Sequence record: OP953026.1 | Length of the DNA stretch: 64,000 bases | Direction: 5' to 3' (one strand) | Shown: positions 33,547-36,404 of the stretch, one piece after another | How positions within the stretch are numbered: the first letter of the stretch is position 1 | Layout: each line of letters begins with the position of its first letter | Notes under the pieces: generated by a model | The model's input: the letters and a program-made list of their open reading frames with translations, nothing else | What the model was told of the DNA's origin: nothing | The model's database searches: none | Made by a program: the position numbers and the translations under genes

Positions 33547-35658
33547 TTAAAACCGCATATATGCGGGCTGATATGGTTTATACATACGTGTATCAAAGTC
33601 ATTAAAATCAATTGCGATATCATACTTCTCAAATGATTCTTTTAGCATCTGATAAATGATTTTATTTTCATCAAAATTATTATTTTTATCAACATAACTT
33701 TCTAATGACTCTGTGATCTCAAATGGAGATTTAATACCCATAATAGCTTCAACCATTGCCTGACTCCATTTTAGAATGTCATCTGACCTTGTTGAGATAT
33801 TCGGTTCATCTTCTGTATCGAGAGTACATTGATATACGACTGTTTGTGAATCCTGACCTTTACGGTAAATTCGAGCAATAGCTTGTTCTAGAATGTAATG
33901 CCTAAACGGTGAATTAATTGTCACCATAGTATCAGCCATCGTCATACGGACCGCTGTTGAAAGGGAAGCATATGTAGCTACCAATGGATTTAATTTAGGG
34001 TCTTTCTCAAATCTACTGATTATTTGAGGTAAATTGTCATTGGTTTTACCATACACCACCGCCGGATGCATACCTAATTTATTGGTGTACTTATCAACAG
34101 TATCAACAACCTCAACAAACGATGTAAATGCAATCGTTTTCTTCATAGTTGATTCAGTGATACCAACCCAGTCAATATACGGTACCATGTCCACATGGCA
34201 CTGAATGCGTTTAGCACCTAAAACCCTTCCCAAACATTCACCTTGTATCTTTAGCATAACGTATTTTATAACTGATTTAATATCTCTAAAAGCAGCTATT
34301 TCATTACGAGGTAAAGTTGGCTCTATAAACATTTTTTCATATTGGTTAGATTCTTTAATTTCTTCACCAATGTATCGCGGGTCTTGATTCTTCTGAATTA
34401 TTTTAATCAAATTCTTATAGCGAGCGAAACCATCTTTCTGCGCCTGGGTCTTAAGAGAGTTCTCGTGTATCGCCATTAGTTTAGCCCAATACTTCTCATC
34501 TTCTGGTCGGCGCGCAGCATAGAACTTTACACGTTCTCTAATAAAAGCTTCACAATCACGTTTAATGGCATTAAGAGTATACTGTGATCCATTTGGTATC
34601 TTGATACGATACGCTTTTATCCTCGGTGGTAAAACCTCAGTATCTTTCTTTTCAATGACGTACGCAATTAACCCAAAGCGATGTTGGACAATATCTAATC
34701 CTTTCTGTGTCTCTTTTCCAAATGCTTTCTTAAAACGTTCTTCAACCTCATTGGTGAAGAGATCGTCTAATACTCTTAATGCACTTACTAATTCAGAACC
34801 AAGTGCTTTAACAGGGGTACCTGACGCTAATAATCTGTTATTAGAGTTAGACATAAAACATATTTGCTGGAACTTAAGAGATTGTGCAGAATTAGGATCG
34901 TTCATATTGTGTGATTCATCCAGAATCACCGTAATGTTCTTACCTTTGAATATACCGCTTCTTAATAGATCAATTATTTTATCTTGCGCCTGGTAATGGG
35001 ATATAAGTATTCTTTGACCGTTGTAGGCTTTATCATCAATGGTCGACCATACTTTTTGTCTTTCCTTATACATCTCAATAATAGATGGCTTCCATATTAG
35101 ATCAATAGACTTCTTTTCACAAACAACTATAATGATATCCGACTCAACCATTTCAGCAATAGCCATCGTCATGAATGTCTTACCAGTACCAGGTTTACCT
35201 GCAACAATATCACCACGTAAACCATACTGGTCAATTCGATAATTATAATTTTCAAAATAAGCTTTTTGAGACTCATCTGGTGTAAATGTCAATTTGTCTA
35301 ACATCTTGAAATTGAGTCTACCTGGTACAGAGTTGGTATCTACAGGACGAGTATTTTTTAACCAGGTATATTGAAGCATTGCTTCACGGATGGCATTAAC
35401 AGTTTTAATAGAGATGTATCTACTTCTATAATTCTTTACTGCTTCTAGCATGTAATATATTTCAGGAGCAAAGAATTTATAAAATGAAATACTACGACGA
35501 CTAACCGTGTTAAATAACTGCGTAGCTAATTTAGTGGTTCGCCAATACTTGTTAATATCTCTAATGAATGCAGCACCATCAAAACCACTGATGATAATTT
35601 CTTGATCAGTTTCAGTAATTGATAGCGAGCCCATTAGCTTCCTAAATGAGTCTATCAT
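33547..35658 (-). CDS. SF2 (SNF2/DEXH-like) helicase, phiKZ gp203-like
   Basis: Walker A GKPGTGKT, ILDESH, ASGTP and motif VI EQAIARIYRKGQ. Confidence 0.88.
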   Translation of the reverse strand: MIDSFRKLMGSLSITETDQEIIISGFDGAAFIRDINKYWRTTKLATQLFNTVSRRSISFYKFFAPEIYYMLEAVKNYRSRYISIKTVNAIREAMLQYTWLKNTRPVDTNSVPGRLNFKMLDKLTFTPDESQKAYFENYNYRIDQYGLRGDIVAGKPGTGKTFMTMAIAEMVESDIIIVVCEKKSIDLIWKPSIIEMYKERQKVWSTIDDKAYNGQRILISHYQAQDKIIDLLRSGIFKGKNITVILDESHNMNDPNSAQSLKFQQICFMSNSNNRLLASGTPVKALGSELVSALRVLDDLFTNEVEERFKKAFGKETQKGLDIVQHRFGLIAYVIEKKDTEVLPPRIKAYRIKIPNGSQYTLNAIKRDCEAFIRERVKFYAARRPEDEKYWAKLMAIHENSLKTQAQKDGFARYKNLIKIIQKNQDPRYIGEEIKESNQYEKMFIEPTLPRNEIAAFRDIKSVIKYVMLKIQGECLGRVLGAKRIQCHVDMVPYIDWVGITESTMKKTIAFTSFVEVVDTVDKYTNKLGMHPAVVYGKTNDNLPQIISRFEKDPKLNPLVATYASLSTAVRMTMADTMVTINSPFRHYILEQAIARIYRKGQDSQTVVYQCTLDTEDEPNISTRSDDILKWSQAMVEAIMGIKSPFEITESLESYVDKNNNFDENKIIYQMLKESFEKYDIAIDFNDFDTRMYKPYQPAYMRF

Positions 35659-35724
35659 TGCATTTTTCCTTAAGGGGTATGTAAATATAACTCTAAGTCA
35701 TAAGATTAGCTAACGAATAAAAAT

Positions 35725-35925
35725 ACGCACAGTGCAATGATATAGAGCAAGGCAGTTTGCGTAAAACGCACTGCACTTTAAGGGGGTGATCCAGTCGTAA
35801 ATAAACCGGGGTACTAAAGTATCGTCAGGAACGACACGAACCCCAACTACGGTGCCTTGCTACTCACCGACCTCTAGATAGGGGTCGGACCTATTACATT
35901 AAAGGAGCCCACCAGGGGCTCCTTT
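35725..35925 (+). ncRNA. candidate structured non-coding RNA
   Basis: GC-richer intergenic stretch with multiple nested complementary segments, a 9-bp hairpin and a terminal terminator (see findings). Confidence 0.5.
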
Positions 35926-35927
35926 AT
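35901..35927 (+). terminator. intrinsic terminator
   Basis: AAAGGAGCCC-ACCAG-GGGCTCCTTT. Confidence 0.75.
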
Positions 35928-35944
35928 GCCATTCATTATAAATT

Positions 35945-35963
35945 AATTTAAATCTATATTACA
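35945..35963 (+). promoter_or_regulatory. early promoter
   Basis: TTTAAATCTATATTAC (TATATTAC 35955-35962). Confidence 0.75.
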
Positions 35964-36008
35964 GGATTACCATAAAGATATTTATCCTTTTATAATGAGG
36001 AAAAGATT

Positions 36009-36404
36009 ATGTCCGATATTAATAGCACCAATGTAACAGATGAATTAGTACCTTATTTTCCATCGGCGGATGCCATTACTAGTTCTACTATTAGGGATGA
36101 AGTAATTCCTAATATTTTGTTATTCTACAAGAATGCTTTTAGTGACTTCCAACACGTTAGTAATATCACAGGTACTAACCAGATTGCATCAGGTTATTTA
36201 CCAGGTGTAGGTTATTATTTCGAGTATAGTGTTACCGGTAATGCTAATCTTATTCCACCTGAAGCAATTAAAGTATTACGTAATGTAATCACTAAAAATG
36301 GATATAAAGATGACATTACCATCACACCAAAAGGTTTTGGCCTAATCAATTGGTTCATTGTAAGAGTATACGTAGATGAGCAAATTAAGAAGACTACTCA
36401 ATAA
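36009..36404 (+). CDS. hypothetical early protein
   Basis: 131 aa, GAGGA RBS, first gene after an early promoter. Confidence 0.75.
   Translation: MSDINSTNVTDELVPYFPSADAITSSTIRDEVIPNILLFYKNAFSDFQHVSNITGTNQIASGYLPGVGYYFEYSVTGNANLIPPEAIKVLRNVITKNGYKDDITITPKGFGLINWFIVRVYVDEQIKKTTQ

Follow-up and report, generated by a model that had tools for sequence, protein, structure and literature searches.

Jumbo phages that form a nucleus need to export their messenger RNAs (mRNAs), which compete for host ribosomes, and how these phages take over translation is an open question; to our knowledge, only proteins have been implicated so far, such as gp014 of phiKZ. RNAs that engage the ribosome have been described in other settings. 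For instance, STAB-SD elements, or 5' stabilisers, such as the one in the Bacillus cryIIIA leader, carry a Shine-Dalgarno (SD)-like sequence that pairs with the anti-SD without starting translation, whereas domain IIId of the hepatitis C virus (HCV) internal ribosome entry site (IRES) pairs with ES7 of 18S ribosomal RNA (rRNA), and the Haloferax Val-tRF is a ribosome-associated non-coding RNA (ncRNA); we know of no ribosome-associated ncRNA that targets the anti-SD. Synthetic oligonucleotides and peptide nucleic acids (PNAs) directed against the 3' end of 16S rRNA block initiation. For phiKZ and PAO1, methods such as Grad-seq, ONT-cappable-seq, antisense knock-down, and Cas13-based editing are in place. 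The present analysis concerns a predicted RNA encoded between the genes PHIKZ203 and PHIKZ204, in a stretch of 64,000 nucleotides (nt) from sequence record OP953026.1 (the window; all coordinates count from its first letter), in which positions 35725–35925 had been singled out from the sequence as a highly structured intergenic RNA candidate (the original prediction).

Among the ncRNAs of this phage group, Grad-seq described two other candidates in phiKZ, and ONT-cappable-seq reported 11 small RNAs (sRNAs) in 201phi2-1, three of them intergenic, as well as, in Putzeys 2024 (PMC10914365), 17 unnamed candidates in phiKZ that derive from 5' untranslated regions (5'UTRs). The PHIKZ203–PHIKZ204 locus is unmentioned in the published phiKZ Grad-seq papers, and a literature search on phiKZ ncRNAs and on any phage RNA that pairs with the anti-SD returned nothing on this locus or mechanism; likewise, no prior report of the 16S complementarity or of the family structure described below was found in the literature. 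The transcript may already be on record among the unnamed candidates of phiKZ or 201phi2-1.

The locus is almost certainly a real, conserved gene for a structured phage ncRNA, and its product is a new family, without an entry in Rfam, that is conserved in phiKZ-related jumbo phages. As a + strand RNA, positions 35725–35925 fold at −72.2 kcal/mol, compared with −52.3 ± 4.0 kcal/mol for 200 dinucleotide shuffles (z = −4.99, with 0 of 200 equally stable or better), and the − strand reaches z = −3.41; the structure observed in the gap is real and well beyond chance. The complementary segments listed in the original prediction are all present where it had placed them, and its description of an unusually GC-rich gap agrees with a G+C content of 45.5% across the 200 nt of 35700–35899, as against 28–40% in the surrounding region. 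Equally, its statement that the gap holds no open reading frame (ORF) and no transfer RNA (tRNA) or transfer-messenger RNA (tmRNA) was confirmed, as no ORF of at least 30 amino acids occurs in 35659–36008 and ARAGORN returned 0 tRNA or tmRNA genes in the window. A scan of the whole window with Rfam 15 (4227 models, including riboswitches, ribozymes, 6S, tmRNA, and phage RNAs) gave nothing at the gathering threshold; no match at E ≤ 10 overlapped 35744–35930, and seven divergent homologues yielded nothing that overlaps the RNA at E ≤ 1.

Searches with blastn located the core of the element in other genera, always inside an unannotated gap of 260–320 nt, namely in Pawinskivirus (PS119XW, HPP-Temi), Miltoncavirus (PhiPA3), Serwervirus (201phi2-1, Viktualia), and Phabiovirus (Phabio). 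The family was collected by pattern scans of IMG/VR and JGI metagenomes and then by a covariance model, seeded with seven 201phi2-1-like sequences and a hand-drawn structure, which together produced 39 matches; the 36 distinct homologues span five named Pseudomonas jumbo-phage genera, the phage pPa_SNUABM_DT01, and uncultured jumbo contigs. One set of homologues is syntenic with phiKZ and has the helicase gene nearby, and a distant set consists of uncultured contigs of 240–280 kb, the sole cultured relative being the P. aeruginosa phage pPa_SNUABM_DT01, which carries both phiKZ-type RNA polymerases and is closest to Noxifer (PMC8541153). A BLAST match in Noxifer was rejected as a homologue, being merely a terminator between structural genes. 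The covariance model matches the window at 35743–35889 with 56 bits (E = 1.5e−11). As controls, 20 of 25 and 4 of 25 pattern-positive loci in two sets had no match to the model, and the same was true of 31 of 32 loci with either the 14-mer by itself or a 16S gene. In the remaining case, the antisense of a genuine 16S gene (L206) scored 17.7 bits, driven by the 16S-complementary motif alone. The weakest members (13–20 bits) therefore rest on their visible architecture, which comprises P1, P2, a GNGA-capped P4, ACGG, and the terminator.

The model structure, consisting of 34 pairs in 7 helices, was tested on the 36 distinct sequences. In total, 95.1% of the cells are paired, compared with 64.8 ± 1.0% after column shuffles and 29–44% when the 3' partners are slid by 1–3 columns; double changes occur in 31 of the 34 pairs, and the covariation score is 0.68, compared with 0.18 for the shuffles and 0.04–0.07 for the slid partners. 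The alignment was fitted to the covariance model and thus favours the structure, yet the margin over the slid controls is still large; a covariation test on 31 sequences had a similar outcome, and compensatory changes are also visible by eye in the raw sequences. When the distant clade alone was aligned with MAFFT and folded with RNAalifold, only P1 was recovered, and the inner helices needed the covariance model together with reading by eye. The helices contain 99 G.U pairs but only 20 A.C mismatches, and the + strand is therefore the RNA. This asymmetry also bears on whether the gap is an element of the DNA itself, such as a replication origin or packaging site (both raised in the original prediction) or a cluster of protein-binding palindromes, for which a divergent intergenic gap of locally raised G+C beside the gene of a virion-packaged helicase would be a fitting place. 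Besides the retention of G.U and not A.C, the better folding of the + strand over the − strand, the orientation of promoter and terminator, and the removal of the gene from the helicase in the distant clade all argue against such an element, and its likelihood is put close to nil.

Each helix contributes to this result (Table 1). P1 (helices 1 and 2 of the model) has 91% and 99% of cells paired and double changes in 11 of 12 pairs, as exemplified by the replacement of GGC/GCC with AGC/GCU in homologues L171 and L172. P2 (helix 3) has 93% of cells paired and 4 pairs with double changes; its flanks, GCAG and CTGC, are invariant within the phiKZ clade, and other hairpins (CAGT-AGAT-ACTG, GTACT-TTCG-AGTAC) take its position in the distant clade. 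P3 (helix 4), with 98% of cells paired and double changes in 5 of 5 pairs, reads GGUAC/GUACC, GAUAC/GUAUC, GAUUAG/CUAAUC, and others among the homologues. The inner helix and P4 (helices 5 and 6) have 93% and 100% of cells paired and double changes in all pairs; P4 is capped by a GNGA tetraloop in the relatives (GAGA, GCGA, GUGA, GGGA) and by an AGGA-containing loop in phiKZ, its exact register in the window being uncertain. At the junction of 35845–35852, the phiKZ clade has (CU)AACUACG(G), where the distant clade has (C)ACGG. Hairpin H2 (helix 7) has 94% of cells paired and double changes in 6 of 6 pairs; it is missing in part of the distant clade, where the covariance model aligns the terminator stem instead.

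The comparison with relatives upholds the outer part of the originally predicted fold, i.e., P1, the P2 hairpin, the 9-bp hairpin now called H2, and the terminator, all of which are conserved and covarying, and revises its interior. The conserved partner of ACCCC (35840–35844) is the second GGGGT (35808–35812) rather than the first (35783–35787), which had been proposed for P3; the originally proposed P4 (35794–35798 with 35831–35835) and P5 (GGTAC/GTATC) are confined to the minimum-energy fold of phiKZ, and nothing corresponds to them in the relatives. Of the pairings put forward as a possible switch or pseudoknot, AGTGCA/TGCACT and GGTGA/TCACC are unconserved in the relatives, whereas that of the second GGGGT holds family-wide as P3, leaving the first-GGGGT alternative confined to the phiKZ lineage.

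Conservation within the family peaks in the long junction that separates P2 from P3, at columns that read TAAGGGGGTGATCCAGTCG in the window (35779–35797). Taken as its reverse complement, this segment matches the 3' end of Pseudomonas 16S rRNA. In E. coli numbering, the target covers 1524–1542, i.e., the 13-nt anti-SD tail together with the 3' strand at the helix 45 base. In E. coli, the 13-nt tail after helix 45 is GAUCACCUCCUUA, and the universal 16S primers UN1542r and UN1541r(C) read TAAGGAGGTGATCCA and AAGGAGGTGATCCAGCC (PMC6107228, PMC5329695). The comparison used genuine rRNA genes from Pseudomonas (P. paraeruginosa, P. delhiensis, P. taiwanensis, and others), whose 16S genes all end in ...CCTGCGGCTGGATCACCTCCTTA. 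Against the last 25 nt of Pseudomonas 16S, the window site forms 21 contiguous Watson-Crick or G.U pairs, while the runner-up on both strands of the window forms 12 and genuine ribosome-binding sites form about 10. The duplex of the window site with the last 19 nt of 16S is worth −34.8 kcal/mol, as against −16.6 ± 2.6 kcal/mol for shuffles; when the first 15 homologues were run against the same 19 nt in RNAduplex, they formed 14–19 contiguous pairs at −28 to −38 kcal/mol, compared with −16 ± 2.5 kcal/mol for shuffles, of which the best of 3000 attained −27.5 kcal/mol.

The boundaries of the complementarity are sharp. Opposite 16S 1526–1541, pairing is retained at each position by 35–36 of the 36 homologues; it starts 0 or 1 nt from the mature 16S 3' terminus in every homologue, with a U opposite A1542 in 23 of 36, and collapses beyond 1524, where the letters become random. 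Where the motif is polymorphic, both variants pair: U1541 faces G in 18 homologues and A in 18, U1537 faces G in 31 and A in 5, and G1526 faces C in 27 and U in 8. At the equivalents of 35782–35786, GGGGG (with G.U opposite U1537) rather than the canonical GGAGG is present in 31 of the 36 homologues, the five GGAGG carriers being Phabio, L336/L345, L344, L353, and L355; GGGGG might avoid the GGA/GGAG motifs of RsmA-type proteins or of SD-cleaving nucleases. Given a complement of this extent and constancy, it seems reasonably likely that the RNA works through base-pairing to the 3' end of host 16S rRNA and docks on the 30S subunit. The decoy for a host RNA-binding or defence protein envisaged in the original prediction gives way here to the ribosome itself as the indicated partner.

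The motif is exposed in the shared fold: none of the covariation-supported helices uses it, so that a conserved, accessible complement of 16–19 nt stands outside the covarying helices, and the alignment partition function leaves it unpaired with a mean probability of 0.68. Opening the motif in single-sequence ensembles costs 3.6–8.8 kcal/mol, which is far below the gain from the duplex, and folds in which it is forced open (at a cost of 3.6–9.6 kcal/mol) give the common family architecture. Candidate helices that would sequester the motif, i.e., CACUGC/GGGGUG from RNAalifold, GGGU/ACCU in the 201phi2-1 group, and GGGGU/ACCCC in phiKZ, were dropped, as none is conserved across clades. In phiKZ and SL2, there are two GGGGU copies (35783–35787 and 35808–35812), both able to pair with ACCCC (35840–35844). 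The first lies inside the 16S-complementary stretch and pairs with ACCCC in the phiKZ minimum-energy fold, in this lineage only; this lineage-specific alternative could mask the motif in phiKZ and SL2.

Elsewhere in the 64-kb window, pairing with the motif does not exceed 14 nt at any site, and the one strong complement identified is rRNA. With the single-stranded 13-nt tail alone, the duplex is worth about −21 kcal/mol, compared with −8 kcal/mol for the site of PHIKZ204 and −10.9 kcal/mol for the strongest of 60 annotated phiKZ genes (177,110–227,109); by duplex energy, it is twice the strongest phiKZ mRNA site measured. The phiKZ genes themselves use ordinary SD sites, with a median of −6.0 kcal/mol as against −2.9 kcal/mol for random 20-mers.

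An SD-like stretch might also act in cis as a ribosome-loading site, either for a tiny or non-canonical ORF or in the manner of STAB-SD, by protecting its own transcript. The motif does contain a perfect extended SD, SD elements that bind 30S subunits without translation occur in Bacillus, and short ORFs begin 13–15 nt downstream in a few lineages. However, AUG, GUG, and UUG are all absent from the 3–15 nt after the SD-like core in 27 of the 36 homologues, and the few short ORFs that do follow it are lineage-specific and have no common frame, length, or sequence; for these reasons, the idea that the motif loads ribosomes to make a peptide was rejected. Moreover, the complementarity continues 4–6 nt past the tail into helix 45, which no SD needs, and a terminator follows, the next gene having its own early promoter or lying on the opposite strand, so there is no cargo to stabilise except the RNA itself. 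Action in cis is accordingly held to be quite improbable.

A second resemblance to rRNA lies further downstream: CUACGGUGCCUUG... (35850–35870; L002:2618–2640), covering the junction and the 3' strand of P1, resembles the antisense of 16S 1493–1514 (primer 1492R) and is collinear with the main 16S complement. The corresponding duplex energies are significant in the phiKZ, PS119XW, and L065 lineages only (z = −2.4 to −3.6), and the family mean is z = −0.8; the notion that the RNA is an antisense of the whole 3' minor domain was rejected as a family feature on account of this mean and because the strand covaries within P1. The resemblance may be a trace of origin by capture of antisense ribosomal DNA (rDNA). 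Taken further, capture suggests another explanation for the main complement, namely that the RNA is a structured ncRNA whose junction serves some other role, such as a site for a phage or host protein or a tertiary contact, and that the 16S match is a relic. In favour of this, selection has clearly acted on the structure apart from the motif; a compact tertiary fold or a ribonucleoprotein (RNP) is suggested by the GNGA tetraloop together with the invariant GCAG/CUGC and ACGG; the second collinear stretch in three lineages is what capture would leave; and the covariance model weakly matches antisense 16S. A relic should decay, yet no part of the RNA is better conserved than these 16 positions, even between clades with hardly any other sequence in common, and their limits match the mature 3' end and the universally conserved portion of 16S; the second similarity, for its part, is not family-wide and sits within the freely covarying P1. 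A relic is thus judged unlikely, although less so than action in cis.

Some relatives carry a further complement to 16S. The sequence UAUCUAAUC(C) occurs in the H2 loop of HPP-Temi (L007:2660–2669), Phabio (L005), L171, and L172, and GGGUAUCU(A) occurs just after H2 in L006, L183, L151, L184, and L172; both are complementary to the 16S 790 loop (GGAUUAGAUACCC), which adjoins helix 45 and the 3' end on the platform of the 30S subunit. After the 3' end, the 790 loop is the second most frequent 16S site matched by family members, the site having been picked post hoc. The complement is absent from the phiKZ window and from the distant clade, and pairing of the H2 loop with the 790 loop was dropped as a family feature because it is seen in some relatives only; in those lineages, it may provide a second contact with the ribosome.

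The RNA gene appears to be transcribed on its own. Upstream of the RNA, all homologues of the phiKZ clade share a layout of an A-rich run, T(T)AC(T), about 12 nt, and (A/G)TGATATAG or TAGTATAG. In phiKZ, middle promoters have a TACT motif centred 22 nt before the start site with an A-rich repeat ahead of it (Wicke 2020, PMC8244752), and the match to this description places the predicted 5' end of the RNA at about 35744–35748. At the other end, a G+C-rich hairpin followed by TTTATG(C/T)C is present in all homologues and fits the phiKZ terminator motif of a hairpin plus TTAT (Putzeys 2024, PMC10914365); in PS119XW, there is no T-run after the hairpin on the reverse strand, and the terminator is therefore oriented on the + strand. 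An early-promoter-like TCTATATTAC is situated at 35953–35962, after the RNA terminator and before PHIKZ204, and also follows the terminator in Phabio, L049, L179, L336, L344, L353, and L355; since it comes only after the terminator, the RNA is not the leader of PHIKZ204. In many lineages, the RNA gene lies just upstream of an early operon. At the level of sequence, then, the element has the marks of an independent transcription unit, with its own promoter-like motif and terminator and no conserved ORF, and the interpretation of a stand-alone phage ncRNA offered in the original prediction is sustained by these signals, by the varying neighbours, and by the covarying helices, although the complement of the 16S 3' end had been missed.

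A cis-regulatory leader (riboswitch or attenuator) or a self-cleaving ribozyme, the latter also suggested at the outset, is rendered very improbable by the same evidence. Such elements would account for conserved unpaired nucleotides in a multi-helix junction and for the terminator behind it; the RNA does lie upstream of PHIKZ204 in phiKZ, and the 17 unnamed phiKZ candidates of Putzeys 2024 (PMC10914365) derive from 5'UTRs. However, the downstream genes are unrelated between phages and have no Pfam match, which is not the linkage expected of a riboswitch, both neighbours in PS119XW lie on the opposite strand, an early promoter separates the RNA from PHIKZ204, and neither the window nor the seven divergent homologues match any riboswitch or ribozyme model in Rfam.

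Table 1. Features of the RNA locus and its flanking genes, in window coordinates.
Feature	Position	Strand	Description
PHIKZ203	33547–35658	−	SNF2/DEAD-type virion-packaged helicase, ending at 35658
Promoter-like region	35716–35745	+	A-rich run (35716–35723), TACG (35724–35727), AATGATATAG (35736–35745)
Predicted ncRNA transcript, ~185 nt	35744–35930	+	Covariance-model match, then terminator; fold z = −4.99
P1, 5' strand (closing helix)	35744–35754	+	Pairs with 35853–35864
P2 hairpin	35755–35774	+	Upper stem TGCGT-AAA-ACGCA (35758–35770)
16S-complementary junction segment	35779–35797	+	Between P2 and P3; wobble pairs extend to 35799
P3, 5' strand GGGGT	35808–35812	+	Pairs with 35840–35844
Inner helix and P4 hairpin	35819–35837	+	35819–35820 with 35836–35837 around hairpin at ~35824–35835
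P3, 3' strand ACCCC	35840–35844	+	Pairs with 35808–35812
Conserved junction AACTACGG	35845–35852	+	Leads into the 3' strand of P1
P1, 3' strand	35853–35864	+	Pairs with 35744–35754
Hairpin H2	35867–35888	+	9 bp, loop AGAT
Intrinsic terminator	35901–35930	+	10-bp G+C-rich hairpin, then TTTATGCC
PHIKZ204	start 36009	+	Gene downstream of the RNA in phiKZ

The window derives from a phiKZ-type Pseudomonas aeruginosa jumbo phage, and its coordinates coincide with those of OP953026.1. Positions 35600–36050 are 100% identical to phiKZ and about 40 other Phikzvirus isolates, and local positions are converted to phiKZ (NC_004629) by adding 177,109, which puts the predicted RNA at 212,853–213,039 (+); over the 50 kb of phiKZ 177,110–227,109, the window is not collinear (25,797 positional mismatches), and phiKZ gene coordinates are therefore not transferable to the whole window. 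The RNA locus occupies the 350-nt gap between PHIKZ203 and PHIKZ204. Annotations of the former differ, naming it a DEAD/DEAH helicase, SNF2 helicase, or "DarB-like antirestriction" protein; it is packaged in the head and was reported as dispensable in a transposon screen (bioRxiv 10.1101/2025.11.23.690004), and the same paper makes no statement on the gap. The sequence GTCATAAGATTAGC at 35697–35710 is conserved in phiKZ, L049, L317, L336, L344, L353, and L355; on the − strand, it reads GCTAATCTTATGAC and precedes the helicase start by about 40 nt, and it is probably a promoter or leader of PHIKZ203. Throughout the phiKZ clade, though not in the DT01-like one, the helicase gene stays adjacent to the RNA. 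The PhiPA3 element is upstream of the helicase gene and shares its direction; that of PS119XW is on the + strand between two − strand genes; and in 201phi2-1, where the element occupies 229,017–229,201 (+) of NC_010821, four small ORFs intervene between it and the helicase gene. The genes next to the RNA are unrelated between lineages and match no Pfam family, and a conserved protein partner next door was rejected on these grounds and because synteny with the helicase is limited to the phiKZ clade.

The mechanism that we favour, pairing with the 16S 3' end, can be outlined as follows. The RNA body is a covarying scaffold, in which P1 encloses P2 and the P3–P4 arm, with H2 and the terminator after it, and this scaffold presents the long P2–P3 junction with its invariant complement of the last 16–19 nt of host 16S. 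Transcribed from the middle-type promoter, presumably by the phage non-virion RNA polymerase, the RNA would form a "super-Shine-Dalgarno" duplex in trans with the 16S 3' end and would dock on 30S subunits or ribosomes, thereby occupying the anti-SD site used by mRNAs. As to the outcome of docking, a timed damping or re-allocation of translation initiation is preferred; next in preference, the flush duplex might serve as a cap that shields the 16S 3' end from 3' exonucleases or from nucleases directed at the anti-SD, and thirdly, engagement of the helix 45 base might interfere with late 30S maturation or subunit joining. In its fullest form, the proposal is of a "ribosome 6S RNA", i.e., a phage RNA that clamps the 16S 3' end and parks, protects, or reprograms host 30S subunits in middle to late infection; this is advanced tentatively, as a plausible idea that we would stop short of calling probable, and a part of it is that a second hairpin may contact the 790 loop in some lineages.

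Several observations weigh against this account. In the mature 30S subunit, the base of helix 45 is folded and would need to be displaced for the conserved CCAG(C/U)C to pair, and cofolding finds the invasion of helix 45 roughly isoenergetic, with no net gain; the conservation of CCAG(C/U)C hints at an unfolded or immature target or at an extra role. Since phiKZ genes have SD sites of their own, a stoichiometric anti-SD blocker would hit phage translation too, and a simple selective shut-off of the host by anti-SD blocking is therefore weakened and unlikely. Single-sequence thermodynamic folds pair part of the motif, as the phiKZ GGGGU does with ACCCC. The pairing-neutral pattern of substitution is weak evidence when taken alone, as the three polymorphic positions fall among 8 of 16 that tolerate transitions (p ~0.1), and the weakest covariance-model matches are partly driven by the motif, as the score of the antisense 16S gene indicates. 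Finally, the complementarity could be the relic of captured antisense rDNA considered above.

If pairing with the 16S 3' end is correct, the RNA would be without known precedent, in viruses or in cells, as a natural RNA that targets the anti-SD in trans, and it would add a layer of RNA to host takeover, aimed at the most important mRNA-recognition element of the ribosome. Were the ribosome idea to fail, a well-supported new family of structured RNAs, with 36 distinct members and strong covariation, would still be left. On the pairing hypothesis, which is directly testable in phiKZ and PAO1, the RNA would represent a new form of antisense or ribosome-associated RNA.

Compared with known systems, the RNA resembles in its gene organisation the trans-acting base-pairing sRNAs of bacteria and phages, which are likewise stand-alone genes with their own promoter and rho-independent terminator (here read from the sequence) and likewise expose a conserved complement to another RNA while the rest forms a structured scaffold. 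It differs from them, whose action usually involves Hfq or ProQ, in that the complement is directed at the 3' end of 16S rRNA rather than at an mRNA, is 16–19 nt long and invariant, and is carried by a body that forms a covarying multi-helix junction, which is far more elaborate. The ncRNA candidates known from the phiKZ group, i.e., 5'UTR_gp40, 3'UTR_PHIKZ298, the T102 and T131 RNAs, and 201phi2-1 sRNA005 / phiKZ sRNAgp182, are similarly short, abundant, and structured transcripts with phiKZ-type terminators, some of them conserved between genera; in contrast, they come from other loci, are mostly UTR-derived, and none has been reported as complementary to rRNA. With regard to its predicted action, the RNA is similar to 6S RNA, an ncRNA that imitates the natural nucleic-acid ligand of a core expression machine and occupies its recognition site. 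However, 6S RNA mimics an open promoter and sequesters RNA polymerase, whereas the predicted target here is the ribosome, and the ligand imitated would be the ribosome-binding site of an mRNA on the 30S subunit. The phage RNA is unrelated to 6S RNA in sequence and structure: it is a multi-branch junction, not a rod of ~180 nt with a central bubble, and matches no 6S model in Rfam.

Among elements that touch the ribosome, STAB-SD shares with the phage RNA an SD-like sequence without a start codon (as found 3–15 nt downstream in 27 of 36 homologues); unlike the phage RNA, it acts in cis at the 5' end of an mRNA through an SD of ordinary length, whereas the phage RNA is a separate, terminated transcript, is not placed at the 5' end of a message, and has a complement of 16–19 nt that reaches helix 45. 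IRESs and ribosome-associated ncRNAs are also structured viral or cellular RNAs that engage the small subunit, partly by pairing with rRNA, as is predicted here, but an IRES acts in cis to translate its own message, and the literature search turned up no such case from a bacterial virus. In sequence, the universal primers UN1541r/UN1542r (PMC5329695) are essentially the same as the motif, TAAGGAGGTGATCCAGCC with one A-to-G change. Unlike the synthetic oligomers against 16S, the phage RNA is natural, virus-encoded, embedded in a conserved fold, and subject to long-term selection, and it would, if the pairing takes place as predicted, provide a natural instance of the anti-SD occlusion that is otherwise known from synthetic antisense oligomers alone.

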